A stretch of DNA of 64,000 nucleotides from Tubulanus polymorphus (lineage: Eukaryota; Animalia; Nemertea). The notes below the pieces were generated by a model that worked only from the letters and a program-made list of their open reading frames with translations, did no database searches and had not been told where the DNA came from. The position numbers were made by a program, and so were the translations under genes. The first letter of the stretch is position 1; every line of letters starts with the position of its first letter. Below are positions 27,106 through 48,900 of the stretch, piece by piece. The DNA lies in the NCBI RefSeq assembly GCF_964204645.1, contig NC_134033.1:266031-330030 (forward strand). Direction: 5' to 3'.

Positions 27106-27422
27106 TATCCATCCGGAACTAGTTTGAGCGCGATTTCATTCCAAATAAATCCTGAACAAGAAAACAATTCAAATTCCATTTAATTTCCAGTAACGGCTCA
27201 GTTTTTGAGAACGGTTTATCTTGATTTCGTTTCAGCGCGATTCCATTCACAATAAATCCTAATATGTTCACAAGAGGTGTCTAATTGTTTACGGGAGACA
27301 GTTTGAGCACCTCACTGTCCAGACTGGTAAACCATACACCATCGCGATAACCTCCAGGTGGGAACATATACAAGACACCCAAATGTAATAATCTGCGCGA
27401 ACGACAAGAATTGTCGAACACA

Positions 27423-30400
27423 ATGAAGCTTCATATTTCATATTATCTAACTATTGGGGTCACTGGTCATAATCCATCTTCGCTCTATAAACTGCGCGGT
27501 GACTCTAGTGAAGATATCAATCCATTCTGAACTGCATGAAGTATATATCGGTATAAATCAAATATCTCTAATAGTAAAATGATTTAATTTGAAAATTGAA
27601 TAATTAAATTTGCCGCTAAAACCGGGTCCAGCTTCCAAAACATCCTCATTAATGATTGGACGCATAATTAGTCATACTCGTCGATGATTGGCTAATTGGT
27701 ACGAAATATGCATAATCTAAACTAGATGATTTACGCAAGTTCTCACAGGACCCGGTATTTACGCGGGAACCTTACAAATCGTTCCACTTTCTTAGGAATA
27801 AAAGTTCCATCACTTCAGTGAAAATCCACCCTCCCAAGATATGGCTGACTTCAGGCCCCGATATCTAGCGGCAATATCGTTCTTGACTCCTTGAAAGGAA
27901 TTGTCGCCCATCAGGTCAGGAAGGTCCGATGATTTTTATTCATCAAATAAATTTCACTTTTCTCTTCCGCCATTTGCTTATCTACACCATTATCAATGCA
28001 TCTAAATCTGTTAAACTTCCTCAACCAGAGAGATTGTTTTAGACATGTATATACTGGTGTAGGTGAATCAATCCTTTCTATATCACGACGATGAAGACAC
28101 GTTTGTTCTTTATAATCTGCACAGTTTTGTTGCAACTGGGAAATATATACATTACACAAACATCTGGAGCTGAAAGTAAGTTACTGCAGCCGCCATTACT
28201 AGACTTTGTAATTATATTTCAGTCAGATTTGCGAATTCGATGACGTCAGTTGTTTAATAATAGATTCACTACAGGCCCTAAATGTAATCTGACAAAAAGA
28301 ACAAACAATAAACACATCTGGACCCAGTTCCATAGTCGCGAGTTAGAGTTAACTCTGAGTTAAAGTTAGTTCATTTTCAATGAGTTAACTGAGGGTCAAA
28401 TCTTAACTCTGAACTGGACCCTGGTTGATTTAATTTCACATGAAGTTTGTATCTTGATGTCTGGTTTGATAAAAAACGAGTCGCTGATATAATCACCTCA
28501 CTTACCAGTGGCGGAGTCAGACATTTAAGTAGAGGGGTCAAGTGCACTTTTTCCCAGGTATCTCTCATATATCTCAATGAAAAATACATTCATAAAACCG
28601 TGTGCAGTAATTCCCGGCAGACACCGCGCGAAACAGAAATCGATAAAGATTTGAATCGTCGTTAATTTCATCATTAATACGATTGATGTTTATATTAATT
28701 TGTTTAAGGAATTTACGGGACGCCTCATTCCGCTCGAGATGCAAAACCCGACAATAAAACGCAAGGAGAAATGATTCGATATACTTGTAAAATAATTGGC
28801 GGAAATTCTAGAGTAATATTCCAAGAGAAGAGAAACGGTTCGGGACAATGGTTAACAGTTCCAGACGACCAGCTTAACAAAACTAAAGACAAACTGAATG
28901 TTGAGTTGGTTGAGCTAAAATTCAAAGCAGATTTCAATCGATACAATGGATCTTCATTTAGATGTCTTGTAAATGAAAGTCCAACATATCCGGAACCTCT
29001 TCAGTTTGATCTGATTGTAGTTAAACGAACTGGTAAGTTACAGTTTGTGTTGCTTATTGAAATAATCAAACAATTTAGAACATTAAAACTTGCATTCTTG
29101 GTTTTCTTAGAAATAACATAGTTAAATTGAGCTGATAAAATGTCTTATATCTGGTAGTTCGTTTTTAGCCTATTTGGGAATTTAGTCCCAGCGGGCTAGT
29201 GCGTTCACTTTTCATCCGTTGACGGAATCCAGTTATTTTGACGAAGATTCAAGACTGGCGGCCATTGTTGTCCGCCAAAATCAGTACTTTTTACACATTT
29301 TTGAAGTTTTTGAGGGAAATAAAACAATGTGGTTTAAAAGGGAAGGGCGACACGAGCGTATTTTTTCACCCGATCGCGACGATTCAATTCGCCAGCGCGA
29401 ATTTAAACGCCCGATACGAGCGGGCACACGTAGCGATTCAACCAAAATTCGGTCAGCGACTGGCACTTATCATATCTATTTTATATTCTTAACAGTAACT
29501 TTTATCAGGAACTGGACCAAGCAAAGTGAAAGAATCACTTACAAAATGTAGTTTTGTTTTTCTTATTTCAGATCATGCAGGTTCCAATCAAATCCCGACG
29601 ATTGAAACCACAACACTGGGGTGAGTTTACATTTCGAAAATAGTTAAAAATGTCCCAGGGAAAAAATCCCCGGACGATGTACGGGCTCCTGTTGTTTCGT
29701 AAAAACGGCTCGTTATGGTCGATGTTTGTTTTGTGAAATAACTTGATTTGATATCTAGCGTGTCTCATTGGCATTTAAAATCGGAATAAGAATCGGGTGC
29801 TGGTTGGTGTATGATCAATGCTTAGAGGTTTATATGTGTTGATGTCAATAAACCGAACTTGTAATAAAAACTGAGACATTCAATAATTATTCATGTCATT
29901 TTCCACAATGAACTGAAATATTCGATAACGATTTTGCTGCTAATTTATTTTAATCGTAAATTACGCCCTTTTCATTCAGAGTTCGTCGTCTGGTTATTAC
30001 TGAAAATGATGGCTCGAAAGTCAAGGTCATTATGAATTTAACTTATTATCAAACTTTCAATATGTGAAATGATAAAGTCCCCGGATGTAACGCACGGAGT
30101 CTAATTATACCCGCTTAATTCAGGGTAAAACAAAATACACTTTGGTAGATTATAATACAATATCTAAATCTGATACCATCATCAGTTTCAACTCTACATC
30201 AGGGGCCGGTTCCATAGTCATGGCTTAGACTTAAGACCAGTCTAAGACCAACTTGGTTCTATAGCCAATCTAACAACTTAAGACCAGTCTTAAGATTTAA
30301 GGCCACTTTTGGACATAAGTCACGACTGTGCAACTGGGCCCAGAGTTCGGTAAAATGGAATTATTATCATTACTCGTTTATTGTTCTCAGACTGACCCCA

Positions 30401-32045
30401 CAAACCGGCTTAAACTGGACCACACTGACTGGACCATGACGATAGTTTACATCGCTTGTGGAGTCATCGGTTTCCTCCTCATCATCATTTCTATCGTTGT
30501 TATCGTCATCGTCATCATCATTTGCAGGTATTTACTGAACAAACAGCAGATTTCTGTAGAGATTATAAATACGTTTGTCTCATTGTTCACCAACATCTAC
30601 AGTTCAATGTCAAGGTCGATTACTATTGATAAGAGGTCGTCATTAGTTCCAAGTCAAGTTTGTCAGTGACGTCATTTATAAATAATAACATATCCGCGCA
30701 CTTCGATTAGAACACGATAAAATGTGTTATTGTACATGTAGGCTTTACCGAGATAATGGCAAACAAAAAAAAAACTAGTCAAAGTTTTATTTTTATCACA
30801 ACAAATAAACGTGAAATTTTAGAATTGATAAGAGATCAGATTTTTGGAAGGAATGCCTACTGGCGGTTAATTAATTAAACTCTTCTAATTCCAATAAAGA
30901 AAGGCCCAAGTTCCAATTGACTCCACTTATTCTTCAAACTAATAATAAACTCATCACTGAACACGTGTTTTATAAGGGGCACACACCGGTTTATGCGGAG
31001 TTAAATCTTCTTTTTTTAAGAATGTTTCCTAAATGCGAGTTCTTGTGGTTAATGACCTAAAAAATTATAATCTCTACTCAAAATCTGACGTTATTTCAAC
31101 CATTTCATTTTTTTCTCGGTCGATTTTTCCACTGCTTAAATTATCAATTTTTTCAGACGCAGACGACCTATCGGTGAAGGTCGTGTGGAGACTACAACTC
31201 TGACTACAACACCGCAGCAACAACTCGAGATGTTAGATGAAGTCTATGATGAGTTGTATGATGACATAGATTCTGATAGTGACAGTAACAAACTGCACAC
31301 CAGCAATCAGAAAACTACTACAGATCCATACATTGATATGGAAGCCGGGAAGGGCAAAGATACGGCTCCTTATATTGATATGGAAGCCGGGAAGGGCAAA
31401 GATACGGCTCCTTACATTGATATGGAAGCCGGGAAGGGCAAAGATACGGCTCCTTATATGGATATGGAAGCCGGTAAGGGCAAAGATACGGCTCCTTACA
31501 TTGATATGGAAGCCGGGAAGGGCAAAGATACAACTCCTTATATGGATATGGGACCTGGAATAGAGGCAGATACATACATGAGTACTGAAGGCGCGATACG
31601 CACAGACACAACTCCCAGCGCCGGAGGAGACACAGATCAATACATGAATCCTGAAGCCTTGGAGACAAAGTATCTTCAGTTAACGGGAGATACTGATGAA
31701 CCTTTAGCAGATGATGTTTATTCTTACGCTACTGTTGAATATAAAGCTCCTTATATGGATATGAGACCCGGAATAGACGAGGATACATACACGAATACCG
31801 AAGGTGCACTGGGCAAAGATACAACTCCTTATATGGATATGGGACCCGGAATAGAGGCAGATACATACATGAGTACTGAAGGCGCGATACGCACAGACAC
31901 AACTCCCAGCGCCGGAGGAGACACAGATCAATACATGAATCCTGAAGCCTTGGAGACAAAGTATCTTCAGTTAACGGGGGATACCGATGAACCTTTGGCA
32001 GATGATGTTTATTCTTACGCTACTGTTGAATATACTTGTGATTAA
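27423..32045 (+). CDS. Ig-domain single-pass receptor with a tyrosine-motif-rich cytoplasmic tail; exons 28709-29032 (Ig), 29572-29620, 29980-30025, 30391-30527 (TM), 31157-32045; uncertain signal exon 27423-27550
   Basis: Ig exon YTC...QW...YNGSSFRCLV; TM IVYIACGVIGFLLIIISIVVIVIVIIIC followed by RRRR; phases 1-1-2-0-2 are consistent. The tail has 8 Y(I/M)DM motifs. The first exon is one base out of frame as assembled. Confidence 0.75.
28320..28420. mobile_element. MITE, PIF/Harbinger-like, CTG target duplication
   Basis: CTG|GACCCAGTTC...GAACTGGACC|CTG imperfect terminal inverted repeats. Confidence 0.65.
29164..29320 (+). mobile_element. Fragment of a dispersed repeat (Helentron/HINE-like), also at 41436 and 51195
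   Basis: Shared TTAGCC..CCCAGCGGGCTA..GCGTTCA..GACGGAATCCAGTTATTTT. Confidence 0.6.
30202..30339. mobile_element. MITE, PIF/Harbinger-like, CAG target duplication
   Basis: CAG|GGGCCGGTTCCATAGTC...GACTGTGCAACTGGGCC|CAG. Confidence 0.7.
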
Positions 32046-33369
32046 ACTCCGTTAGAGGGCGCCACTGGACTAACAACAACTGATAATACGTACACAAGAC
32101 ATAACAACGTTTTAACATCATTATTGTAATGGTTACGGCATTTGCGAACTGAACAACATTGAATTTAAACTGCAACAATAATTCATTTCATGATAATCCA
32201 CCAGGTGTCGTTAGTGTAGAGGCAGCAGACGGATATAGGTCACTACAACCCGCGCCACTGACGCAGTGCGCTGTTTCAATTACATTCAATATTTATGAAG
32301 GACATCACAACAAAATCGGTAATTTTTAGCAAATGCATACTTTCGTCGAATTGTATTCAAACTGTAAATAGAATTTCAAAAAATTAATCTACAAAAATTA
32401 ACCTTTAAAATCGTTAACTTTTTAATGAGTAAGCATGAATTCAAAATAATAGTCATTTGTAGCTAAACTAGATTTTTTTTTAGTAAGTTTTAAAAATCTT
32501 TTGTCAAAAACTCGTAACGTTTGTGAGGTAAGGATTACTTTATTTAGATAAGATATGATTCAACAAGGAAGCGCGCAATAATTGTCAATGTAAATACAGT
32601 ATTATGTACACACAGACCTCTGATAAATCATCGTGAACATTACAACTGGTGCTGAGACTATCAAAGATCCAACATTAATAAGATGAGAAAGTCGCATTCA
32701 TTGCATCTCTCACTTGCCGCAAACTCTTGACGTTTTTTGGGATATATTCGCACTATAATCATGTTTGCGGGAGCAGCATATCGACCTAGTAACCAAGAGA
32801 CATATTTTCGAAATTAGTTAAGGATTTAGTTAAAGACGCATCGATATAGTTTGGAATATCAGCAATTGGTTAAAATTTGACAAATAAAAGAAGGCAACAT
32901 ATAACGATATTCGGTAACTTTTAGTAGCAAATAACAACAGCTTTCTTTAACTCTCGTCATATTGGATAAACCTATAATGTCACCAGATGGCGTGTCAGTC
33001 GGGCACGATTTAGTTTGTGGTTTAGATTAGTTGATCTCGAGCACTATTGGATTATTTTTCCTTTTCAATTCAGTAGAGGCGCTAATGATGATTGCGCAGA
33101 AATTATTTCCGACCGGCACACGCCATCTGGTTACTTCATAGTGTTATTTATCCTATCCTTGATGGCGTGAGTTGATGAGTATGAGTACCTGAAGGGCCTC
33201 AGAGTTCATATATCAGAGAACCCTCAATAACTGGAAGCACCACAAGAGAAAGTTAAGATAGGAAACTGCACCCTTTCTCCGTAGCGCGTGAGGAACGGAA
33301 GGGCCATGCGTAAAGACGATAGTACGGTCGATACTCGAGTACTGCGGTTTATAATCAAGAGTTCAACAG

Positions 33370-33564
33370 ATAACGGGATTGCGCAACGTCACGTGATCTT
33401 TATTATCCAATAACAAGCTGTGGACGTGCAACACTTACCGCGCATGCGTGTAAAACGCCCTAAACTTGACGGCCAGTTTTTGCGATCGCTGGGTGTTATC
33501 GCCTATAGCTGAACGTTAAGAGACAAGAAGAGATCTAGAGAGACAGATAGAAATAATTAACAAG
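33370..33564 (+). promoter_or_regulatory. Probable promoter and non-coding first exon of the Ig-NLR gene
   Basis: CpG-rich patch with ATTGCGCAA (C/EBP-like), CACGTG, CCAAT and GCGCATGCG (NRF1-like), then a strong donor AAG|GTGAGT at 33564/33565; matching acceptor TTTCAAG at 36962. Confidence 0.45.
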
Positions 33565-33644
33565 GTGAGTAGTCGAATAAAACACTTTACTCCGTGTTTA
33601 CTGTAGATAAATGAAGAAGAATCACAATTCGAGTTTTATATATG

Positions 33645-34185
33645 ATATAGTTTATTATTTTGAAACCACGAAGTTTCGACTGTTGACTATTAACAGCCAT
33701 CATCGGGTGGAATCACCAGAAACAATAAACATAGCGTATTAACTTTACAGGATCCAGATCCACAGTTGTGAGGTAAGATTTGACTCTGAGTTAAAACATT
33801 GAAATTTGATTTTTAACTCAGAATTATCTCTTAACTCACAACTAGGGAACCGGGTCCCAGACAAAAACGGTGTCAGAATTAAGATAAACCGAACAATATA
33901 AACAGTTCAAAATGAATATAAATTATGTAACTATGTGAAGTGGACTGAAGTGGATGTGGAATAGCAGAGTGACACATAGTGACATTAACCAAAATCTAGT
34001 AGAGAGTTGATATGTCTGGAAAATAATTGGTTATGTGGAGAAAAACCAATATTTAGATTGGTAAAAGTTGGATTTCAAAAGTTTACAAATTAGGGCTGAT
34101 TCCACTATGCGTCTCTTATGAATATCTTCACAATGATAAATGAGTTGAGAATTTTAAAAGTCAAATTGATGGCGGTAACAATTCG
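33645..34185 (-). mobile_element. Decayed Penelope-like element 3' remnant (GIY-YIG C-terminus plus hammerhead-like motif)
   Basis: The minus strand reads HQFDF*NSQLIYHCEDIHKRRIVESALICKLL at ~34080-34175. Downstream, at 33666-33710, is CCAC CCGATGA T GGCTGTT..AACAGTC GAAACTTC GTGG. Confidence 0.6.
33751..33857. mobile_element. MITE, PIF/Harbinger-like, CAG target duplication, nested in the Penelope remnant
   Basis: CAG|GATCCAGATCCACAGTTGTGAG...CTCACAACTAGGGAACCGGGTCC|CAG. Confidence 0.6.
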
Positions 34186-34380
34186 AATTGTGGGATTTCT
34201 TCAATTGATTAACAAAGTATTTTGATGAATTTTCTGATCTTGATGTGTATATAATTATGTGATATTCACCGATGTAAGTTAGGCCTATAAAGTTACCCCT
34301 GTTGTACTGGGCCAGAGTCTGACGTGTGACCTTAACCCGCCTTATAGAATGCTTGTGGAACTGGTTCTGTCCGTGGATCC

Positions 34381-34611
34381 ATAAAATGTTACTCGATATT
34401 TTCTATACTGTGATTTTGCTGTTTTATTTTACTTCCATCTATAAGTTTTGATAATCTCTGAGCGAATGATGTATTTTTAATATAATTCTAACTCTTGAGA
34501 CTGAATGTCTGTGATATTCTCAGATCATCGCTAAATAGTAACCGGACACTTCATTCCTAGACTATTAATTTATTTTCTGTCAGATAACGATTATTTTTTG
34601 TTGTACTTTTC
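34381..34611. repeat. ~230-bp near-identical dispersed duplicate of 42336-42565
   Basis: ATAAAATGTTACTCGATATTTTC...TTGTTGTACTTTT is present at both sites with few differences. Confidence 0.9.
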
Positions 34612-35104
34612 ATCAATGCTTTTCTTATTTTCATTTTGGTTTTATTCAGGACAATATTACGATTAATAAATCCTATTTCCACCGGAAGCCATATCGAATT
34701 GGTTTATTCCACATTTAAAAAAAATGTCGCCATATTCAGTAAGAAGTTTTCACAAATCTTCCAATTTCTGCATATATAATATGTGATAGCCCAATAACGG
34801 GGTCGGTTTTGACTTTTGAATTTTTAAGGCTCTGAAATGCAATTTATGCACATTTGGCATCAAATCTATCCATCAACTAAATATGGTATTATGACTTTTT
34901 AAAGGAAATGTATTTCATATGGAAAATTGATATTGTGTAAATAACAAAAAACAACTCGGTGCAAATACGAAATTATATATTATATAGGCGTACATGTGAT
35001 GGAATTAGTGAATCAGGCTTATCTCCCTGTACAAACCGCGTCAACGCTTTACGAGATTGCGTGAAATCTTTTTTAAACGACACACATTTGAACAGTGTCA
35101 CTGA

Positions 35105-36285
35105 TGTGACTAATATTGCTTGACCGATAGTAACAGCTTTTCATCAAGAAATAAAGGTATAAAAAATGGTTACATCTTGATGGAAGGAATTCATGGAAAA
35201 TATCACGTACAGTGAAAACAACCGGTTCAAACTGGTTTTGTAGCTTAAATTTAATCGTTTCAAAATCGATTTTATCGTTTAAATGATATAATGAACAAAC
35301 ATAAAACGTCTTAAGGTCATTGTAGAAAGTTATCAAAATCAGTTGTTTATGAGCTGAGATATCGCAGTCACAGTAAAAAAAAAGCCGACTGATTGAACTG
35401 TGGTCGGTCAAAGTCACGCGAATTTGAGTGTACATGTCTGGTAGGTGCCTGGTTATACTAGGATTACAGATACTATCCAAACTACGAAATAGAAATAGTG
35501 AGACAACCACACACAATACAAATAACATCATTTATATATATATATATATATATATAGAACGCTGTGAACACGGGAGTCAACTACATCAAAACTTATTTCC
35601 TTATATTTATATATCCCTTGTGAAGCAACGCATAGTAAAAACGTCACGCGTCAAACACTGTTTTCAGATATCTATCTTATCTACAAATTCAAACAACAAG
35701 AAAATATACGGCATAAATTACGTGCGAACTAAAATATCATTCTGATAACAACACATGACTAATACACAGGCTTCGCAATATACTATACAATAAAGAAATT
35801 GGAGACAAAATGACAACAACCGAACCTGATAATCAATGCTATAACGTGCAGAATATGTCAATCATGTGACTAATATTACTTGACCGATAGTAACAGCTAT
35901 TCATCAAGAAATAAAGGTATAAAAAATGGTTATAAATTGATGCAAGGAATTCATGGAAAATATCACGCGCTGTGAAAACAACCGGTTCAATCTGGTTTTG
36001 TAGCTTAAATTTAATCGTATTAAAATCGGTTTTGTCGTTTAAATGATATAATGAACAAAACATAAAGTAAGGTCAATGATTTGACTAATATTTTTAACAG
36101 CTTTTCTTCAAGAAATAAAGATATAATACATAAGATAAAAGATATTCATGGAAAAGATCACGTAAAGCTAAAAGAACCGGTTTAAACTGGTAACCGTTTT
36201 TATATCTTATCAAAATTGAATATTTATGAGCTGAGATATCAGAGTTAAACACAGTCAAAAAAACCGCCTGACTGAACTATGGACT
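35105..36285. repeat. Diverged direct duplication (35105-35405 and 35864-36282)
   Basis: Shared ATGTGACTAATATT..TTGACCGATAGTAACAGC..GATATAATGAACAAA block. Confidence 0.8.
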
Positions 36286-36978
36286 GAACTCTGGAATTTG
36301 AGGTGTCTGGGTGGTTTGGTGATGATCTCCGTGGAGACAACCACTGCCAGGGCTGGGTGAAGGCAGAAAGGTGACAATTTCTAATGGTGTTTATTTCAGC
36401 TCGTCTATTGCAATGACTTTGCACTAAAATAAAATGCTATCGGCGAATATCAGCGAATATTCGCTAAGCTACTGTTGAAACAGCTGTAAGAAGTTTAATT
36501 TCAAACACGCATTATCATCTTTAACTGGCGTTCACTTGAATATTCCGACAATAGTTTTTCCCCAAGTCGATAAGCTCGATTAATATAAGACGCGTTCATG
36601 TTATTCTCAAAATCAGCAAAAATAACAATCTTTTCATTCCGAGTTGTTTTTATCACGTAACACGTTGATTAGCTAAATGAACAAGCGCATCAGGGCAAAA
36701 TTAAATGCAATATCTCAACATACCGTACACAAATCCAGGTCTACCAACCTCATTCCGAAAAATCAACTTCAATTATACTTAATTGAATAATTAATTAATC
36801 TTAAATCTCAAGATAAAAGATATTTTCCTGTACAAAAATGTGTCCCCAAGTTGATAACAGTGTTTCTAATGGAAACGAGAGGTAAGGCGGGGTTTAATGT
36901 AGACCTTTAAAAATGCTAAATTCGATTTCAATGATAAAAATTATGGAAACATATATTTCAAGGTATCACGTTGATGTA

Positions 36979-39900
36979 ATGAAGATGAAGAACTGGACCT
37001 GTTTGTTAATTCTACTGCTGACAATCAAGTTTTATTCAGAAGCTGCATCGGTACGAAATAAGAGAAATACCGGTGAGTTTAAATGATGTGTCTATACTGG
37101 TATCAACCATCACTAGGCGGTTACCAGAATTCAATTTCAATTTTGAAAAAACTGCTCAAGGCATCTGGACAGTGTGAATGTATTACCGGGTACAAGAATA
37201 TTACGTATATTGTGTATTTGATATTTCAGCACCTGATGGAGTTGTACTGGACAGTGTGAATGTATTACCGGGTACAAGAATATTACGTATATTGTGTATT
37301 TGATATTTCAGCACCTGATGGAGTTGTACTGGACAGTGTGAATGTATTACCGGGTACAAGAATATTACGTATATTGTGTATTTGATATTTCAGCACCTGA
37401 TGGAGCTGTACTGGACAGTGTGAATGTATTACCGGGTACAAGAATATTACGTATATTGTGTATTTGATATTTCAGCACCTGATGGAGTTGTACTGGACAG
37501 TGTGAATGTATTACCGGTTACAAGAATATTACGTATATTGTGTATTTGATATTTCAGCACGTGATGTAGTTGTACTGGACAGTGTGAATGTATTACCGGG
37601 TACAAGAATATTACGTATATTGTGTATTTGATATTTCAGCACCTGATGGAGTTGTACTGGTCAGTGTGAATGTATTACCGGGTACAAGAATATTACGTAT
37701 ATCGTGTATTTGATATTTCAGCACCTGATGGAGTTGTACTGGTCAGTGTGAATGTATTACCGGGTACAAGAATATTACGTATATTGTGTATTTGATATTT
37801 CAGCACCTGATGGAGTTGTACTGGTCAGTGTGAATGTATTACCGGGTACAAGAATATTACGTATATTGTGTATTTGATATTTCAGCACCTGATGGAGTTG
37901 TACTGGTCAGTGTGAATGTATTACCGGGTACAAGAATATTACGTATATTGTGTATTTGATATTTCAGCACCTGATGGAGTTGTACTGGACAGTGTGAATG
38001 TATTACCGGGTACACGTGTATTACTGTCGCAGGAAGGCAAAAATGTTAGTATTACCTGTAAACAGAGCAGCTCTACAGCGACTGGTGTAGAATTCCAGCT
38101 ACAAGTGAACAGTGGAGCAGGAGGGGCCTGGACTCCAATACCGCTCGGTGTATCGAAGTTGTGGAAAATTTTACCTGAGGCTGGTAAAATGTATAAATGT
38201 GTGGCCACTAATTCAGCCGGAAGGAAAGAAAGTAAAATCTACCAATCAGATGTAATCAGTGAGTATAGCGGGAACCTCGTAAATCAGTTTGTCATTAGAT
38301 AATCATTTTTTTCTTCAAAATTCGACTGAACCTAATTTAAATATTGCGGAAAGAAAATATGATGAAATAGATTACTGTCTTAGCTGAATTTCCGTCATAT
38401 ATACTTGCAAAAACCTGTGGAAACAACAGCAAGGCCTGGTTCCACAGTTGTGAGGTAAAGAGTTAACTCCGAGTTAAAGTTAGTTCATTTTCAGTGTTTT
38501 AATTAAGACTCTTTTAACTTAAGTCAAATTCCACAATTTCCACAATTTCGACTTAAGTCAGTTTCCACAACTGTGGAACTGGATCATGAGTTTTAAACCA
38601 GAAGTCAAATTTTACAATTTCTTTTATACATGTATGAATATTATCAAAAATTCATAAAGAGGATTTATCTTAGATATGATGCGTTATGTGATATCTCTAG
38701 AACCCAGTGATACCATGTGGGATCTCGGTAGAATTAGATTTAGCCTGTGCCCTCTACTGGGGCGGTAAACTGGTTACAGATCCTATAGTTACCGTAGAGA
38801 ACAATGCTAATAAATGAGAAAAAAATACGTTCCTCAGCTACGAGTATTTATTACACTCCAACCATTTCCACGGTATATGGAGGAAAAAATAGTATTCAGA
38901 ATTATTTACAAAACAGAAAATAAAATCAACTTGAACCGAAACAAACTTTATTCTTAACGTTGTATTTACGATTTATACTATTGGAGGGATTTCACATCTA
39001 GACCTAATTTGATAAATTTATTCAGATTTAAAGTTGAATTTTTTAATCCAAGGTTCCTAAAAGGGTTTAAATTTAAGTAAATTTTACGAGATTCGGTGAG
39101 TTACTAATATGAAATACGCCACGCAATCGATAGAAACTGGAACTATGATTGTGCTGGGGTTGCAATGTTAACTATTTGTAAATACACTTGTTACGGACCC
39201 AAAAATCTGAGGTCAAAATATAAACACAATCGACCTGATTACAGAGGAATTCAAACATTTCCCGTCCACCACCAATTATAGTATGATTTTCTTTATAGGT
39301 ATAAACATAAATGAAAACCCGTGTAAGATGGCTCAATTCCAATCGCTGACTTGTACTTGTAAAGCCATTAGTAAAATCGGTAATCCAAACATAACAGTTA
39401 AATGGTTTGCTGATGGATTTTCTGAAGGTGAAACTGATTTTTATGAGATTACTAAAAAACATGACGTAAATACTCCGCTAAAAGATGGAGTTATCAACAG
39501 GATTCAGAAAGATTTTCGTCTCTTGATGCACGCGACATTGACTCAATGTCGTTTGTGGGAGTATAATGGGATAAAACTACTGGAACCACCTCACAATCAA
39601 ATACAACATCAAACTCCAATGGATGTTACGTGTAAGTTGAATAAACATTGTTTTGTATTTGTTGCCCTGAGCATAGGACATTCTATTGTTAATACCACAG
39701 TTAGAGATTTAGGAGTTACTTGGATAACACTTTTACAACGACGGCTGATCGTCTCTGAGTTTCTTTCGTTTCGATATTTGGTCGCAATGAATAAATTTGC
39801 TTGTATTTATTTGCTTTGTGAAAATTTTCGAAAATCAATGAACAAATGTTTTTCGAAAATCAATGAACAAATGTTGTTGACGTGATAAGGTTCTAGACTG

Positions 39901-42900
39901 ATCAGTAAAATTGTGAAAAGAAATTAAATAATATATACATATAATCAATGATAAATCAAATCAATAATGATTAAATATGTAACAAATTCTATCCATTAAA
40001 TACATTTACATCTTTTTCTTTCAGATTTTCCTGTTGAAATTCTGACGAACGATAATTATACGGGAAAACCTGACATTAGAACACCAGGAGAAATTGTAGA
40101 ATATACTTGTAGAACAGTTGAAGGGAGGCCCGATCCTACAGTGATATACCAGCAGAAGAGAAAAGGTTCTGAACAATGGCAGCCAATTCCTGATCCACAA
40201 CCTCTTAAAGTACCTCACAAAGGGGGTTTTAACACGACCTACAAGTTTAAAGCTGATTTCAAACTGCACAATGGAACCTCATTTCGATGCGCTGTAAAGG
40301 AGAACCTTACGTTTCCAGAACCTCAGCAATTCAATCCAATCATCGTTTATTGTAAGTAACAGATTTATTTTTCTGAAATATCTTCCATAGAAATTGGCTT
40401 TGGGTTTGAGCGATGGTACAAACCTCTTGTCGTAGTAGATCTATGATCTACCCTGAACATGTCACGATGACATCAGGTTCGAATCCCTCCCGATGGATGA
40501 TGGGTCTACTATGTCAGGGTTTCAGAAACCTTAAAAACTTTTAACTTTTGCTTTTATCAGATTTTGCACCAGATTTCAAGAAAGACGGTGAAAATGAAAC
40601 ACACGCGGCGTATATTGTAACAGTTAATAGTAACCTATTGACTCAACAAGTTACATGTGACCCTCCAGCTGTCGTTCAGAAACTATCAAACTCTCAGTGG
40701 AATATAACCATACCTATCCTAAACAGTATGGTAACTGACTATAGAGGGCGCTGTTTGGCTGACGGTATTAATGAAAGGGCCATTTATGTCGCTCGTTATC
40801 ATAACGCCGGTCCAACTGATAAACCAGGTAAGATTCCGGGTCAGAACTGGATAAGTTTTATCTGAATCTGAACAACTGCTCGAAGTCATCTCCTCTTGAC
40901 CTGATGAATTGCTTCAGTCGTCATCGGAAAATTAATTATATTCAACTGAGGTCATCTCTATTTTTTGAGTTTCAAGATATTTGTGATTTAATTGACTAAG
41001 TGTAACCTATGTGTTAAAAAGTCTTATCTGAACTAGAATTCAGATCAGTTATTTTTTTCATTTTATCACGTGTCACATTTGAAATGTACCACATATATTT
41101 GATATATGCAATATTCAAAATGCTGTAACTTCTATTTAGACGCCAGTTAACCCCTGAACACGTGTTTGTTATTTCAATTGCTGATTTATTGAAATTGTAG
41201 TTGTCGATGGATGGAATGGAATAAAAGTGGCTGGTGTTGTAATCGGTATATTGATATTACTGATTCTGATTGTACTGTTTATTCTGTGGCGTCGTGGCTG
41301 CTGTAAGTTTTACATAAAACCATCATTTAATCTGAAGAAAACAATAATTTAACCATGAACGAAGTCAAAACGGAACGTGATATTCCTAAATGAACAGTAG
41401 TAGAATTGATATTGAAACAAGCAGTATTTCTGATTTTAGACACTTGGGACTTTAGTCCCAGCGGGCTATCGCGTTCATTTGTCGCCCGTCCACCCGTCCG
41501 TTCGTAGACAGAATCCAGTAATTTTTGAAGACGCTGTTTTACACATATTTCAAGTTTTCGAGGGAAATTTTGAAGACGCTTTTATTATCTTGATCATATG
41601 TATTTGTATCCCCCCAGGGCCCATCAGCATAAGAAAAAAAGGGTCAAATGGACACAAGATGACCGTCCTGTGACTTTTTTGTGCCCAAAAATGTCATCTG
41701 GTTTGTAATTTTTCATTTAAATTTGTGCTGGCTATTCTGTGGATTGGAATCTTCAATAGCTGGTACAGGTATTTTTCATCAGCCAATTATGACGCAATTG
41801 GCGGCCATCTTGGTGTCATTAGTACTCATTCGTAGGTGGGAAAAAGTTTTTCCACATTATATTGATACCTAAGCGTATTTTGTTCCAACAATCAATTGCA
41901 AAATTGTAACTCATGTCATCGTCTATGATTGTGGTGAGTTTCAAGGTCATAAGTTATTCTATACGGTTACCAGGGGGCGTTGAATATCGAAATTGTTAGG
42001 TTGTTGAGCATTTGAAACCACTTTCCAAGCAAATGGTGTCCCTGAACCCCTAGTTTAATTTACAGTCACGTGTTTGGATCCGAAACCTAAAGATGTGATT
42101 GAATTGTTGCGTTGGACAAGTGAAACCTGGTATGAAAAAGGTAAGATTCTCTCACATGATTTACTGCACATATTCTCAGATATCGGTTTGATAATTTTAG
42201 GTGTTTTTTTTTTCTTTGCAGATCATGAAAATTGGGTGAAAACACGTGACCGACCGCAGCCAGGTATTTATAGAATTATCAACCTTTTGATACTTAAAGA
42301 TATTTTAATTAAACGAAGTTCATTAGTAAATCCATATAAAATGTTACTCGATATTTTCTATACTGTGATTTTGCTGTTTTATTTTACTTCCATCTATAAG
42401 TTTTGATAATCTCTGAGCGAATGATGTATTTTTAATATAATTCTAACTCTTGAGACTGAATGTCTGTGATATTCTCAGATCATCGCTAAACAGTAATCGG
42501 ACACTTCATTCCTAGACTATTCATTTATTTTCTGTCAGATAACGATTATTTTTTGTTGTACTTTTCTTCTCATCAGATCTCATCCACTGATGCAATCAAT
42601 CATGCAATGTTGCTCATAATTCGAAATCATATCAAATAGATAATTATCCATTTAAAAACATAACAGAATTATAAGATCAGTTAATTATCACATATAAATT
42701 CGGCGGCCATCTTAGAGTCATCAGTCCTCGCTCATAAGTGAAAGAGTTTTTTTGAGGAAAATATCAACAGGTTTTTAATTTATAGTCTTGATATAAGATT
42801 ATTATTAGCACTTTAAGAGGATACGTCTCCTCACGTGAAATTGAGTTATCCGGTTGTCTATTCTAGCCACCAGGGGGAGTTGATTATTGAATCATATACG

Positions 42901-45900
42901 AATTATTTATTGGGATATTTTATCACAATCAATCGCAAACTTATAATTGTTGTGATTTTAATTTTTTGCTCGAGAAAATATAACTTAAAATTGTTCATTC
43001 ATCAAAAACTTGATTGTTTGTGACGCCAATGTCTTCATTTGAAAGCCAATTAATTATAAACAACTTTTTTATAGAAACTGTTAGAATAATAAAAGATGTT
43101 TACGGAACCGAGAATGATTGGGAGTTAACGAGAGATAAGGATAAACAAGGTAAGAGTAGTGACTGGTAAGAGAAGTGAGTGGTAAGAGTAGTGAGGGGTA
43201 AGAGTAGTGACTGGTAAGAGTAGTAAATGGTAAGAGAAGTGAGTGGTAAGAGTAGTGAGGGGTAAGAGTAGTGACTGGTAAGAGTAGTAAATGGTAAGAG
43301 AAGTGAGTGGTAAGAGTAGTGAGAGGTAAGAGGAGTGAGTGGTAAGAGTAGTGAGTGGTAAGATGAGTGAGAGGTAAGAGGAGTGAGAGGTAAGAGTAGT
43401 GAGTGGTAAGAGGAGTGAGTGGTAAGAGTAGTGAGGGGTAAGAGTAGTAAGAGGTTTAGAGTAGTGAGTGGTAAGAGGAGTGAGTGGTAAGAGGAGTGAG
43501 AGGTAAGAGGAGTGAGTGGTAAGAGGAGTGAGTGGTAAGAGGAGTGAGAGGTAAGAGGAGTGAGTGGTAAGAGGAGTGAGTGGTAAGAGGAGTGAGTGGT
43601 AAGAGGAGTGAGAGGTAAGAGGAGTGAGAGGTAAGAGGAGTGAGTGGTATGAGTAGTGAGGGGTAAGAGTAGTGACTGGTAAGAGTAGTAAATGGTAAGA
43701 GAAGTGAGTGGTAAGAGTAGTGAGTGGTAAGAGGAGTGATATAAACAATTCACAATTGAACAAATACTTTTTATATTTCATTTCAGAAAAAGGTATCAAA
43801 GAATCCGCGTTCCAACAGTTATCACGTGATCAAAGTAAGCTATAGTTTGTGTTAGTTTAAGTTCATGTACATGATTACATGCACATGTCACATAAGTGTA
43901 CATGCACATGTTTGTATTGTTTAAATGTACATATATCAGTTATGTGTGAATTCATACATGTCAGTAACATGTGAATGTGAGTTCAATTAACACGAGTTTA
44001 ATCAATATATTTTCAGACATGTTAGATTTGGTCAAAGAAATTCTAAGTAAGTTCAAGATATGACTCGGTATTTCCTCTTCAACTCGAATCTTGGATTCAA
44101 ATGTGTTTATAATTATCTATTGACAGGAAAATACTTTAGAATAAACAATTTAGAAACGAAACTATCAAATGATATCGGTAAGATTTGATTGAATACAGTT
44201 ATTGATGTATGAGTTTATTGATTATTATTCTACTGTCAACTCATTTTGTAAATGTATTACAGATACATTACTGAACAAGAAGAGGTCAATAGATGGCGCT
44301 GATGCAGTTTACAATAGAGATGAAGGTAAGTTATTATCATACACTGTTCATAGACGAAATCAATTATTCTGCTTTACTGATTAAAATGAAGCAAATCTCA
44401 TTCAAGATGGCCGCTGGGCCGCCTTTTGGCAATGTTAAAGAGGCCTATACCGATTCTGGAAAACCTTTCTGGGGGTTTCGTTTCAACCAAAATACTTCGT
44501 ATACATTCCGGAATAGTGTAATCCGTAAACCGGATTGAAGTGACCGGTTAAGAATTTGTAATCTGGAATTGATATTCCTAAACCTGAATATTTACAATCA
44601 AAACCTGTTTTGTTGCAATTTCTGGTCTAAATTCCGCATTTCATACATCGAATTTGAGATGTTTTACTCACGCGTGCCAGAATATCACTAATTCAACAGT
44701 TGTTAATAATCCATCCTTGGATTAAACAGAACTAATATAGGTACATTCAAACTCTTATTATTGTTATATGCTGATGATACGGTTATACTCGCCGAGACGC
44801 CAGAAGGACTTCAATGTGCCCTTGATAATATTTCTAATTACTGTCATGTAATGCATATCGGAATTAATTATGAAAAAACGAAAATTGTCGTCTTTAGAAA
44901 AGCTGTCAATGTAAGAAACTTTGTTTGGAAGATTGATGGACAAGTAATAGAAAGTGTAAACTGTTTTACATACTTAGGTATGGATTTCAATTTCAATGGA
45001 AAACATAATGTAACTATCAACAGTCTGGCTTCTCGGGGAGTATCAGCATAATATAATTTCAGAAAATACCTTCTGCAGTATCCAAAAGTCACACCCAGGC
45101 TAGCCATTAAATTTTTTAACAGCCTCGTGGTACCTGTCTTAACTTATGGCTGCCAAAATATGGGGTTTCAAAGAACAAAGAAAACTAGAGAGAATCCCTC
45201 TCAAATTTTATAAATACCTCCTGGGAGTTAAAAACTCAACACCTGATAACTTTGTATTTAGTGAAATTGGTAAATATCCAACACATATTCAGCAAAGAAT
45301 GTTAATTGTGAAATATTGGCTTAATATACATAAAACTAAACCCGAGAAACTAACTAAGCTGATGTACAATCAAATGTTAGATGATATCATACGTGATCAC
45401 CGTGTAATTAATAAGCTTCTTTGGTTAGAGATCTATTGAATGGCCTAGGATATGTGGAATCTATGTGGAAAGGCTTTCAATCGCCTTTGGTATATATTAT
45501 GTATTCAATGTATTTATATACTTGAATTATTTACCCGCCATACATTATCATGTAATTGTGTCATATCATTAAAAAAAATTATATTTTTTTGATATAATAA
45601 ACTAATAAATTAATATAAATCCCACAATGAGAAAGAAAAATTAGTCCGACTTACAACAACAAAATTAAAACAAAGAGCAAAGAGACTAATTGAGATATGA
45701 TATTGATTTCAATTGAACTAATTTCATCTTAATTTCTTTAATTCAGATGAAGCACATGTTAGTTTTATAACGCAATTGAATGAAGAGAAAAGACCCCTGA
45801 CAGACAAAGAGAAACAGTTCATCACAGATGGTCAGTAAAACTATGAATTATAACATAGTCTTACATTTTGAAAAAGGTGCTTCCTTTCTGAAGAGAAGCC

Positions 45901-48900
45901 ATTGCAAATAATAGAAGCCTTTGAAAATAATGTAGTTTCTTGTGAGTTTCAGATCCCCAGTAAACAGTTATAATGATGAATTTATACATTTTCAGTTGGT
46001 TCAGCAGTTGAGACTATTGTTGATTTGTTTGCTAAAATGTCCGGTAGGTTCCATAAATCATTTCAGTAAAAATACTGTGGAGTTTGTTGTGGAATCATTG
46101 AATAATTGATTGTGTTTATTTTTAATGTAGATGCTGAATTATGTGAACGAGGAATATTGAACATAAAACGTAGGTTCTAATTATCATTAATCCGTAACAG
46201 TTCACACCGTTGTTTTCACCGCTACTAAATAAGATAATTTTGAGATCTCCACGGTCGATACTTGGAGTATCCGAAAACCCGACAAAACCAACACTAAACA
46301 AGTCAGATCAAAAATATCTACGTTATAATCATTGCCAAAGATTCACTATTGTAATTATCATATTTAAACTACAAAAAATAACATAAACAATAACATAAAA
46401 ACCCACTATGTACAAATTAAAAGAGTTTTTAAAATCGAGAATTTATTTATTCAAACAATCTAAAATATAAGAACACGATGTTTCAATCTCACACAAGTGT
46501 GACGATGATCTCTAGTGTGAGATCGAAACGTCGTGTATTTCATATTCTAGATTGGTTGAATAAATAAATTCTAATAGATTAAGTTCACTGTACATTTATA
46601 TGTGAATTCTCTGTACATTAACATATGAGTTCGCTGTACATGTACATGTGAGTTCTCTGTAGTATTTGTAATTTATGTGCTAAACACTTTTTCTTTACAT
46701 TTCAGCTACTGTTGAAATTGCTGGTAAGTTATGATATTCACTATGATGTTTAAACTGATGCTGTTCAATTAAAACTGAAATATCCCTGTATCATTTTGTA
46801 GAAAACTATGTGCAAGAAATACTTAAAACAGAAGTCAAACAACAGAATGGTGAGTGTAATCTATCAGGGGGAGGGGGGAGGGGGTACTTACAACTGTAAA
46901 CTGACTACAAATTAAACACATTTTGATCAATTACAGGAAACCTCGTCACACAAATAGAAAACCAGAAAGTAACTGATGAAACAAAGACAGGTTTGTTGCA
47001 AGTTAATCTTATTATCATAATTTATCCATAATCGATTCAAATGTTAATAGTAAATTGTGTGTGATTTTTTGTCAACTGAAAAACTTAATATACAATTTTT
47101 CCCCGCAATGTCATTATGTCTGTTTTACAGAAATGAGAGTGGCTGACAGGAACCGTTCTGTAACAGTCAAATGTGGTAGGAATAAAAATGTTATCATTCG
47201 AAAATTATTTTAAAATGACAAATCGTTTTGTATAAATTGGTTCATCTTCTGAGGTTCAATAAAACCATCGGTGCCACCGATTGATGGGGAATATTTATAC
47301 GATCAAATTCATTCACTTCAATACGAGAAATGAAATATTAAATTCTAGTTTGAACTGATCCGGTCACTATTCATGTTATTCTATTCATATATTCATTTGT
47401 AGAATCAGTTTTATTGGCGTCAAGTTTGCAGAAATTAGAAGAGAACAAACATTCTACAGAACTAGATAAAAGTAAGTGTAAACTTTCTTTGTCCCTTGAG
47501 CTAAATTTAAAGAGTATTTGAGAGGCATCTGTTTTGATTCAGAACCAAGTTTTAAGTATTAAGAATGTAACTAGGTCACAGTTTGTATCGATGTGAATAT
47601 GTTTTGGACCGAGTTCATCTCAGATGATTGAAATCAGTTGTGTTTAAACACAAGAAAGTTACGCAGTATCATCGGTTCAAAATCAATCATAGCACTAGGA
47701 GCCGTCCCTTTCTCTAATGGATGGCTCCAAGAATATCCAAGAAAATCAAGCTGTATCATCGGTTCAATTGTCAGTCATCAAAAATCAATCATAGCGCGAA
47801 GACACCGTGTTTTGATTATCATATGCATATATCCAATAAAGGGTGGCTTCGACATATCCACATCACATCATCATAAGAGGATGGCTCCGTGTGGATTTCT
47901 GTCAAAATATTTTAATAAGGGAAATTATTTTCTGATTTGTTTATTTTGTTGTTCAACTGTTTTTTCAGGTATCTATGAAATAAGCCGAGATGTTTTAGGT
48001 AAGAACTAATTAGTAACAAACTATAAGTATGGTAGTTAAGGGTTAAAAGCAGAAGCTTACAAACCAATAACTAGCAGACTTTTATATCGCTAGTAGATGT
48101 AGCAAGCAATTTGTTGGATCAAATTTGTTTTCAGATATTTGAAAATTAAAAGTGTTGATGCCTCAGTATTGGATACCATGTTAGATTAAACCTAATAGTG
48201 ATTTGTGTTCTCTTTTTTCAGAGATCAAATTGAAAATTGCAGTTTTCAAATCTATCAAAGGTAAAAGAGGTCTTTATATATATTAGGCGAATTCACACGA
48301 CGGGCAAAAATTCCGTTCCAAGTTGGTCTGGTTCGAAATAGGTCCGGTCCAAATTTGGAACGGACTAAATCTGTATGGGGACAGAAACTGGTACCATGAA
48401 CCCATAAATCTATCATTTAGGTATGAACGCACTCAGATTTGGTCCGGTCCAAATTTGGACCGGACCAATGGTGCGGACCGGTTGTTTTCCATGATATTTT
48501 CTCGAATAATTTCTAGAATTGTACGCTGGGCGAGGTGAAAGATTTCAGAAACAACTCAAAGAGAAACTGAAACAAGAGGAAAATGAAGAGAGTAAAAATG
48601 AGGAGGAAATGAACAGAATAATTCACAGTTCAGTTTGTCAGGCGTTTAAATATATCACTGATATGGATGAAAGTAAATATCGATTTTATACATGTACTCA
48701 ACATGCACATGTAGTATTTTTACATGTTTCATATAGCAGGGATATGTTGTAACCATGTCAACCAATAAAAAGGGCATATATTCTTAATTCAGGGCGGAAA
48801 GGCATATCGGCAAAATTTTTGAAATTTTACAATCATTTTGGAGCTTTCTGAGCATCTCTGAGAGGCATTTAGTCAAGAAACATAGGTTATATATTTCGGA

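Follow-up and report, generated by a model that had tools for sequence, protein, structure and literature searches.

A YxxM-tail gene and a putative Ig-NACHT-LRR gene lie side by side in a recurrent layout of a Tubulanus polymorphus immunoglobulin family

Two neighbouring genes on the same strand of a Tubulanus polymorphus contig carry related copies of one immunoglobulin (Ig) domain. They are probably two separate genes of an Ig family of this species, and their adjacency is then best read as the standard genomic unit of the family. The analysed window is a stretch of 64,000 nt (NC_134033.1, 266,031-330,030, forward strand), to which all window coordinates refer. Gene 1 ends in a tail rich in tyrosine motifs, and gene 2 is predicted to end in a NACHT-LRR module. 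The original prediction described the two as paired receptors with a common Ig domain and different signalling tails. Its description of adjacent same-strand genes is borne out, as are the related domain and the YxxM/tyrosine tail set against NACHT-LRR; no opposition of ITIM, ITAM or charged transmembrane (TM) residues is seen.

The shared Ig exon pair

The shared domain is encoded at 28709-29032 (324 nt) and 40025-40351 (327 nt), in exons with symmetric phase 1, AG acceptors and GTAAGT donors. The translations of the two exons are identical at 46/96 positions (48%) with an E-value of 2e-30 in BLASTP, confirming the likeness claimed in the original prediction with the right coordinates and strand. 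Both Ig peptides quoted there are recovered from the + strand at these positions as phase-1 exons, with the reading frame offset by 2. A tblastn search of the window with the upstream exon as query returns the exon at 40025-40351 as its sole match, and no other ectodomain exon of gene 2 is matched. The dS between the two shared exons is 1.14, which is saturated, and no low-dS stretch is found between them.

Gene 1, a single-Ig gene with a YxxM tail

Gene 1 (28091-32045, +) is spliced and encodes a 509-aa single-Ig membrane protein, its junction model being identical to the public protein XP_074657788.1 (P0013). Exon 1 (28091..28175, +) supplies the ATG and signal peptide (P0013 residues 1-28), ends in phase 1 and is connected to the next exon by a GT..AG joint, 28175>28709, in the RNA-like contigs of run X2. 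The shared family domain, which is the only Ig domain of the protein and has an Ig fold in AlphaFold, is encoded by exon 2 (28709..29032, +; 324 nt, phase 1-1). Exons 3 (29572..29620, +; 49 nt) and 4 (29980..30025, +; 46 nt) encode a stalk; the GT..AG joints 29032>29572 and 29620>29980 are present in X2, as are the joints of exon 4 in record 13 of that run. This record spans exons 4-5-6 at 98% identity and thereby includes exon 5 (30391..30527, +), which encodes a transmembrane helix with no charged residue. According to translation and motif scanning, exon 6 (31157..32045, +) contributes an RRRR stop-transfer signal, a 295-aa acidic tail and the stop codon.

The tail contains 23 tyrosines, including 8 YxxM, 3 YxN and 2 TKYLQL motifs, and finishes with YSYATVEY. 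The eight YxxM motifs are repeats within a 14-residue minisatellite-like unit, and the tail as a whole is very acidic. A regex scan of the tail detects the two ITSM-like TKYLQL motifs but neither an ITIM nor an ITAM, and Pfam returns nothing above threshold for the tail or for the TM exons. About 40 loci in the genome belong to the same tail family. The motif block is kept in paralogues bearing 1, 3 or 8 YxxM, and paralogues of only 55-70% identity still have the tail motifs and, at the C-terminus, YSYA(T/S)V.

All five GT..AG joints of gene 1 appear in the X2 contigs, and X2 depth is zero in its introns at 29758-29954 and 30546-31136. An RNA contig lying over the Ig exon (28732-28937) was dropped as proof of transcription of that exon. 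It is 95% identical, has paralogue residues at its four listed codon changes, shows an X1 depth 3-4 times that of neighbouring contigs and probably derives from C9 paralogues. Because of these paralogue residues, the window-specific evidence of transcription begins at joint 29032>29572. The search returned no contig records encoding P0013, and the possible RNA run X4 gave nothing. An untranscribed pseudogene upstream, the objection raised in the original prediction, is ruled out by the spliced X2 contigs, the 509 open codons and the public protein P0013; gene 1 is transcribed and spliced and is therefore no dead pseudogene.

Gene 1 is also a mosaic. Identity to the C9 genes at 4.4-5.07 Mb is 87-91% in its 5' half and only 70-76% in its 3' half, with the breakpoint at the place where the second Ig exon of the C9 genes is absent. 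Conversion or recombination is thus seen between gene 1 and these C9 genes, and not with gene 2.

Gene 2, a putative Ig-NACHT-LRR gene

Gene 2 (36979-57016, +) is laid out as a signal peptide, three Ig exons, a domain D4, a TM segment, a helical linker made of micro-exons and a NACHT-LRR exon. Exon 1 (36979..37072, +) encodes the signal peptide (residues 1-32 of the paralogue P0151), ends in phase 1 and has a GTGAGT donor. It is followed by Ig exon A (37968..38258, +; 291 nt, phase 1-1), which has splice sites, a weak Pfam Ig_2 match and 31 further copies, all on contig C6. Ig-like exon B (39299..39631, +; 333 nt, phase 1-1) likewise has splice sites and is collinear with P0151, P0006 and P0007. 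Ig exon C (40025..40351, +; 327 nt, phase 1-1) carries the shared family domain in its C-type form, with a weak Pfam C2-set_2 match. The ectodomain closes with D4 (40561..40827, +; 267 nt, phase 1-1), a membrane-proximal two-Cys domain, and the TM exon (41201..41302, +; 102 nt, phase 1-1; P0151 residues 970-1000) continues into WRRGCC.

The cytoplasmic linker corresponds to a micro-exon region (42056..52101, +) that is collinear by blastn with C6 at 21.75 Mb, where the sister genes of the C6 array are NACHT-less; P0151 and P0007 map to it piecewise. The NACHT-LRR exon (54141..57016, +) is entered in phase 1 through a CAG acceptor and corresponds to P0151 residues 1487-2390. Its open reading frame (54083-57013) matches Pfam NACHT at 1.2e-15, scoring 58.2 bits where the cutoff is 26.7, and NLRC4_HD2 and LRR_14 (LRR) are matched below threshold. 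About 20 intact NACHT paralogues are present in the genome.

No public protein model of gene 2 was found, as none of the 28 matches exceeds 85% identity with the window. P0151, a RefSeq model of 2393 aa, is collinear with gene 2 from 36985 to 56980, and the phase-1 chain is unbroken, the NACHT exon opening in phase 1 like all earlier exons. Because of this homology and phase, we infer that the Ig and NACHT exons belong to one gene and one transcript. The third Ig exon that the original prediction placed in an NLR-type gene is accordingly found as exon C, in a gene assembled from collinearity and phase.

The shared Ig domain and its family

At least 63 family Ig exons are found in the genome, six-frame searches giving 64 matches with the gene 1 exon as query and 66 with that of gene 2. 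The Ig hallmark residues Cys26, Trp47 and Cys85 are invariant in 62 copies of the family alignment. AlphaFold models the domain as a beta sandwich (pLDDT 83), and in Foldseek (probability 1.00) this model matches best, among PDB structures, Ig domains including those of MyBP-C (C1) and CD96 (D1), with TM scores of 0.6-0.66. Pfam matches are sub-threshold only, C2-set_2 reaching 18 of the 21 bits required. Judged by its conserved residues and predicted fold, the shared domain is an immunoglobulin superfamily domain.

The family tree separates a C-type clade of 24 exons from 39 others, both with 100/100 support, and the exons of gene 1 and gene 2 fall into these two deepest clades. Near-invariant polar residues are common to both clades, for example in the QQKRRGSEQW and KADFKLHNGTSFRC blocks. 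Relatives far closer than the neighbour exist elsewhere, at 82-90% identity for the gene 1 exon and 73-85% for the gene 2 exon. With the gene 1 exon as query, that of gene 2 ranks 23rd of 64, the 22 better-scoring copies lying on other contigs or megabases away; in the reverse search the gene 1 exon ranks 40th of 66. The original prediction held that similarity no greater than that to unlinked Ig genes would speak against it, and this is what the ranks give, because the similarity of the pair does not exceed that to unlinked copies. On this comparison the shared domain is a hallmark module of the family, with no private link between gene 1 and gene 2, and the evidence does not point to private exon exchange between them.

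Family proteins contain from 1 to 11 Ig domains and have at least four outputs: YxxM tails, a micro-exon helical tail, a micro-exon or short linker with NACHT-LRR, and a GPI-like C-terminus. These outputs, together with the symmetric phase-1 exons, therefore support the proposal of an invertebrate family in which phase-1 Ig exons are shuffled onto alternative outputs. Searching 1.84 billion representatives with a profile returns only 15 proteins at E<1e-30, and every name looked up is T. polymorphus. In literature searches, neither this Ig family nor an immune repertoire of T. polymorphus was found described.

Recurrence of the two-gene layout

For 18 of the 24 C-type Ig exons, the same strand carries a YxxM-tail (Y) gene at a distance of 7.4-19.4 kb upstream. 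The two-gene layout recurs about 17 times in the genome; 10/18 units are in one tandem array. The upstream Y genes span four deep Y-gene clades. A NACHT exon lies downstream of 7/24 C-type exons, corresponding to five genes only. About 10 Y genes are without a C-type partner, including the six C9 genes closest to gene 1, and about five C-type genes are without a Y gene.

The Ig exons of the Y genes diverge fast, and those of the C-type genes are homogenised, with conversion or recombination among C-type exons. Synonymous distances of the partners are uncoupled across units, the mean dS being 0.67 in Y exons and 0.19 in C-type exons, with a Spearman coefficient of -0.19; stable co-duplication of partners is therefore rejected as a general rule. 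Both trees nevertheless mirror one block duplication that lies outside the array, the Y exons 18379769/22296712 being sisters and their partners 18390357/22285287 also being sisters.

Interpretation

In the reading proposed here, the standard unit would consist of a YxxM-tail gene and, downstream of it, a C-type gene with several Ig exons. Block duplication would have multiplied this unit, with gene conversion and recombination reshaping it, and the two copies of the shared domain in gene 1 and gene 2 would have separated long ago. From motifs and domain order we infer the signalling roles of both genes. Once tyrosine-phosphorylated, the gene 1 tail could serve as an SH2 docking array, with pYxxM binding PI3K p85 and pYxN binding Grb2-like adaptors; the T. 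polymorphus genome does encode a p85 iSH2 domain. The tail motif might alternatively act as a YxxPhi endocytic signal. Gene 2 would be a surface receptor in which ligand-driven clustering operates the STAND ATPase switch.

Functional coupling could lie behind the recurrent layout. In its explicit form, the Y protein would be a dedicated co-receptor or amplifier of the neighbouring multi-Ig receptor. The two would be co-regulated and would associate in cis via a conserved surface of the Ig domain that both carry, and the two-gene unit would be kept together because both components are required. The placement of a Y gene directly upstream in the same orientation at 18/24 C-type exons, drawn from four deep Y clades, agrees with this idea, as does the mirrored duplication outside the array, and the near-invariant polar blocks common to both clades are compatible with a conserved interaction surface. 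However, block duplication alone predicts adjacency, 10/18 units form one tandem array, and the uncoupled dS of the partners and the unpaired Y and C-type genes fit poorly with a required partnership. The Ig half of gene 1 itself is a recent import from the unpaired C9 group. A dedicated co-receptor is consequently judged unlikely, while still deserving some weight. Slightly more doubtful is the broader proposal of a linked two-component surface receptor system for immunity or self/non-self recognition, in which each of about 17 units would consist of a single-Ig YxxM co-receptor that diverges fast and a multi-Ig receptor (helical micro-exon tail, with or without NACHT-LRR), acting together via the shared Ig domain. 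If true, it would wire an NLR to tyrosine-kinase/PI3K signalling at the plasma membrane.

It is improbable that turnover of the cluster left gene 1 as a by-product in decay or without function, namely a neutral chimera that has lost one Ig exon and whose tail was inflated by minisatellite slippage. Compared with the closest paralogues, its Ig exon has a dN/dS of 1.1-1.9, which is not significantly different from 1 because it is based on only 3-3.5 synonymous differences. This value, the mosaic structure with loss of the Ig2 exon and the 8 YxxM motifs, compared with 1-3 in paralogues, would suit such a history, but the 509 open codons in six exons with canonical splice sites, the spliced RNA-like contigs specific to the 3' half and the conserved tail motifs and YSYA(T/S)V block argue against it.

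Paired receptors are by definition highly alike in their extracellular parts and carry opposing motifs (PMC2832619). Apart from adjacency on one strand, one related Ig domain and very different tails, the neighbours do not fit this definition: only one of four gene 2 ectodomain exons is common to both genes, at 48% identity and a dS of 1.14; opposing signalling is not seen, with no ITIM or ITAM, an uncharged gene 1 TM segment and a NACHT-LRR end on gene 2; and conversion is found with C9 genes and among C-type exons instead of between the partners. The logic of a similar ectodomain with an opposite tail fails because closer relatives exist elsewhere and the two exons belong to the two deepest clades. 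Classical vertebrate-style pairing, with near-identical ectodomains held alike by gene conversion, one ligand and opposite outputs, is thus rejected by the sequence tests and is very improbable.

Comparison with known systems

Read as two separate genes in a standard family unit, the locus still resembles vertebrate paired receptors (KIR, LILR, Siglec-5/14, CEACAM1/CEACAM3) in its clustered Ig-superfamily genes with phase-1 Ig exons, in the joining of related ectodomain modules to different cytoplasmic outputs, and in recombination or conversion within the cluster, here represented by the mosaic gene 1 and the homogenised C-type exons. It differs in that the neighbours are 48% identical in one domain, whereas the ligand-binding regions of vertebrate pairs are near-identical, and in that the outputs are a YxxM array and a NACHT-LRR module outside the ITIM-versus-ITAM or charged-TM logic.

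The YxxM and YxN motifs of CD28/ICOS, DAP10 and CD19-type chains recruit PI3K p85 and Grb2 in vertebrates. Gene 1 is similar in having a single Ig domain, a TM segment and a YxxM-dominated tail with YxN, in a genome encoding p85 iSH2, but it has no sequence homology to these chains and its eight YxxM motifs, set in 14-residue units, also fit YxxPhi. The Hydractinia Alr complex comprises large, clustered, lineage-restricted Ig-like membrane proteins with tail tyrosine motifs, and the T. polymorphus family shares each of these properties, the domain type being different. To our knowledge, the Alr family does not include NACHT outputs.

As a rule, NLRs act as sensors in the cytosol. In the sea cucumber Apostichopus japonicus, AjNLRC4 is located at the cell surface, binds bacteria and drives phagocytosis (PMC8699970). 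Like gene 2, it combines Ig domains outside the cell with a membrane anchor and a NACHT domain inside; unlike gene 2, which has one TM segment, a micro-exon linker and LRRs, it has two TM segments and no LRR (PMC8699970), and no neighbouring YxxM gene is described for it. Since the profile search returned only T. polymorphus proteins at E<1e-30, no sequence relationship was found between the Ig domains of AjNLRC4 and those of this family. The Ig-NACHT design is therefore already known from echinoderms, and an NLR switch with an Ig ectodomain in T. polymorphus would mean that surface NLRs arose by a second, independent route. For nemerteans, the locus is a candidate system of pathogen or self recognition, and an NLR switch adjoining a receptor that has tyrosine motifs and uses the same Ig module would show exon shuffling assembling a spiralian immune-type repertoire with interchangeable outputs.

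A family of Ig exons carried on alternative outputs

The related immunoglobulin (Ig) exons of the two neighbouring genes, at 28709-29032 in the upstream gene (gene 1) and at 40025-40351 in the downstream NLR gene (gene 2), are both open in the correct reading frame on the + strand of the window, which spans 266031-330030 of contig C9. The exons are 324 and 327 nt long, respectively, and each is symmetric phase 1 with an AG acceptor and a GTAAGT donor. The original prediction quoted a peptide from each exon as visibly alike; both peptides are present at these positions, and BLASTP confirms the likeness with 46/96 identities (48%, E 2e-30). A search within the window found no match between the upstream Ig exon and the other exons of gene 2. 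Cys26, Trp47 and Cys85 are invariant among 62 aligned family copies, and AlphaFold, run from the family alignment, predicts a beta sandwich (pLDDT 83, pTM 0.75) whose closest counterparts in the PDB are Ig domains, MyBP-C C1 and CD96 D1 among them. Pfam reports C2-set and Ig_2 on the Ig exons below threshold only. The family alignment also shows near-invariance, across both deep clades, of the polar blocks QQKRRGSEQW and KADF and of an N-x-T/S sequon (HNGT or HNGS) immediately N-terminal to the F-strand Cys, a pattern suggesting that one face of the domain, glycosylated or interacting, is conserved.

Six-frame searches with the two exons as queries recover 64 and 66 copies of the domain genome-wide. 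A domain profile searched against 1.84 billion representative proteins retrieves 15 proteins at E<1e-30, followed by generic multi-Ig proteins only; those of the 15 whose names were looked up all belong to the palaeonemertean ribbon worm Tubulanus polymorphus, the species of the window. Public family members include YxxM-tail proteins with one or two Ig domains (P0009, P0013, P0014 and P0015), multi-Ig proteins with micro-exon tails and no NACHT (P0003, P0007 and others), Ig-NACHT proteins with 3, 8 or 11 Ig domains (P0006, P0151 and P0001), and P0010, in which Ig and D4 domains are followed by an Asn/Gly-rich stretch and a hydrophobic C-terminus that looks like a GPI signal. These architectures support the broader proposal that phase-1 Ig exons have been combined with alternative outputs. 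In P0012 (XP_074658331.1, 823 aa), a RefSeq model on contig C9, a ubiquitin C-terminal hydrolase domain is combined with a family Ig domain that has 82% identity to the upstream exon; the model represents either a genuine fusion or two genes merged by the prediction.

Structure of the two genes and transcription of gene 1

Contigs from sequencing run X2 behave as RNA over gene 1 because they have zero depth in the introns 29758-29954 and 30546-31136 and contain five GT..AG joints absent from the other runs (28175>28709, 29032>29572, 29620>29980, 30025>30391 and 30527>31157). From the ATG at 28091, these joints yield six exons in phases 0/1/1/2/0/2 totalling 1530 nt (509 codons), and this model matches the public protein P0013 (XP_074657788.1, LOC141910843, 509 aa) exactly. 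In order, the product comprises a signal peptide, one Ig domain, a ~32-residue stalk, a TM helix free of charged residues, RRRR and an acidic tail of 295 residues. Among the 23 tyrosines of this tail are those of eight YxxM motifs (YIDM or YMDM), three YxN and two ITSM-like TKYLQL motifs, and of the C-terminal YSYATVEY; a motif scan of the tail finds no ITIM or ITAM. Paralogous tails retain the same motif blocks, with one or three YxxM.

The X1/X2 contig over the gene 1 Ig exon probably stems from paralogues on C9, since it is only 95% identical, is covered in run X1 at 3-4 times the depth of neighbouring contigs, and has four codon changes listed (R>T, I>S, G>E and L>Q), all of which give residues of the paralogue P0002. 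Gene-1-specific transcription is demonstrated by the joint 29032>29572 and by a 374-nt contig, 98% identical, that covers exon 5 and extends into exons 4 and 6. Intron 4 contains a ~145 bp very high-copy element (30200-30344; contig depth 10^5). Most contigs have copies of it, dozens at 90-97% identity and in part tandemly arranged, and the element resembles a SINE, a MITE or the unit of a satellite.

Gene 2 begins on the + strand with a signal exon (36979-37072), followed by Ig A (37968-38258), Ig B (39299-39631), Ig C (40025-40351), D4 (40561-40827) and TM (41201-41302) exons, all phase 1-1, and by a NACHT-LRR exon on the same strand that opens at 54141 and is entered in phase 1. Pfam confirms NACHT in a 977-codon ORF at 54083-57013. 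The paralogous RefSeq model P0151 (2393 aa), comprising Ig repeats, D4, TM, micro-exons and NACHT-LRR, is collinear with 36985-56980; a protein of gene 2 itself was not found among the public protein matches. From homology and phase, we infer that gene 2 is a single gene.

About ten tandem copies of an 82-bp unit (37165-37942), directly upstream of the real Ig exon A, repeat its 3' splice site and first codons, and the array also precedes the C6 paralogues at 96-98% identity, above that of the following exon. Open frames with a reverse-transcriptase YADD motif at 44710-45436, inside the micro-exon region of gene 2, look like a retroelement fragment in an intron. A 69-bp-period satellite at 22041-23413 has a single related copy in the array unit on C6.

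Relatedness and history of the pair

The original prediction interpreted the neighbours as paired receptors, a term for "extracellularly very similar receptors" whose motifs oppose each other and whose likeness gene conversion maintains (PMC2832619). The Ig similarity is not special to the window pair. The nearest relatives of the upstream exon are six genes at C9 4.4-5.07 Mb (82-90% identity), and the NLR exon ranks 23rd among its 64 matches, behind copies on C6 and C19. Reciprocally, the nearest relatives of the NLR exon are ~23 exons on C6 (73-85%), and the upstream exon ranks 40th among its 66 matches, so that the likeness is no greater than to unlinked Ig genes. A 63-exon maximum-likelihood tree separates a tight C-type clade of 24 exons, including the NLR exon, from 39 exons of YxxM-type genes, both with 100/100 support. 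At 48% identity, with saturated synonymous divergence (dS 1.14) and placement in separate deepest clades, the two exons do not have the ectodomain likeness of a receptor pair. Vertebrate-type paired receptors are defined by near-alike ectodomains, a feature that the window genes lack.

The arrangement of the two genes does recur when the coordinates of Ig, YxxM-tail and NACHT exons are combined. A complete Y gene (family Ig plus YxxM tail) lies 7.4-19.4 kb upstream on the same strand for 18/24 C-type Ig exons; ten of the 18 are arranged as a tandem array, repeating every ~37 kb, at C6 21.75-22.09 Mb, and the remainder are located at C6 18.34, 18.38, 22.29, 22.38, 22.76 and 22.81 Mb and in the window. 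NACHT lies downstream for only 7 of the 24 C-type exons (5 genes), and C-type genes within the array show collinearity with gene 2 from 37165 to ~52100 and end without it. Approximately ten Y genes lack a C-type neighbour; the six at C9 4.2-5.07 Mb are all among them, since Ig-A-type exons occur on C6 and in the window only.

The partners mostly do not behave as a co-evolving unit. One duplication is mirrored in both trees, with Y exons 18379769 and 22296712 as sisters and their partners 18390357 and 22285287 likewise. Across nine units, mean dS is 0.67 for the Y Ig exons versus 0.19 for the C-type Ig exons, with no correlation (Spearman -0.19); given this uncoupling, the C-type exons were either homogenised or spread later.

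Gene 1 is itself a mosaic, in which recombination put an Ig-bearing 5' half onto another tail. The interval 26756-29320 is 87-91% identical to the two-Ig genes on C9, falling to only 70-76% from 29525 onward, and the gene 1 Ig exon nests inside the Ig1 clade of those genes (dS 0.044). Against C9 4.40 and 4.90 Mb, DNA identity drops from ~90% to ~73% at 29320-29525, and this breakpoint is exactly where the second Ig exon (~1.6 kb) of the C9 paralogues is absent from gene 1. The recombination was among Y genes, not between the two neighbours. The dN/dS of the gene 1 Ig exon relative to its paralogues is 1.1-1.9, on 3-3.5 synonymous differences only and not significantly above 1; that of C-type exons is about 0.5. 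A ~1 kb repeat at 26756-27729 has ~30 copies, the best (94-96% identical) on the small contigs C56, C32 and C8. These contigs also bear NACHT genes 81-86% identical to that of the window, and could represent other haplotypes or additional copies of the locus.

Proposed function and comparison with known systems

Gene 1 would encode a receptor or co-receptor of the cell surface. After tyrosine phosphorylation, its tail could dock SH2 proteins, with pYxxM recruiting PI3K p85 and pYxN recruiting Grb2-like adaptors; the genome encodes a p85 iSH2 domain at C2 27.96 Mb. The same motifs would also fit YxxPhi endocytic signals. Gene 2 would encode a surface NLR, and it appears unlikely that the two neighbours act together. 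What is new here is the recurrence of the two-gene unit and the measurement showing that its partners have independent histories; together these make the locus a variant among clustered immune-type receptor families of the IgSF, a kind already known. The Ig-TM-NACHT design is already known from echinoderms, where the closest functional precedent for gene 2 is the sea cucumber receptor AjNLRC4, which has this architecture and was shown to bind bacteria and drive phagocytosis (PMC8699970).
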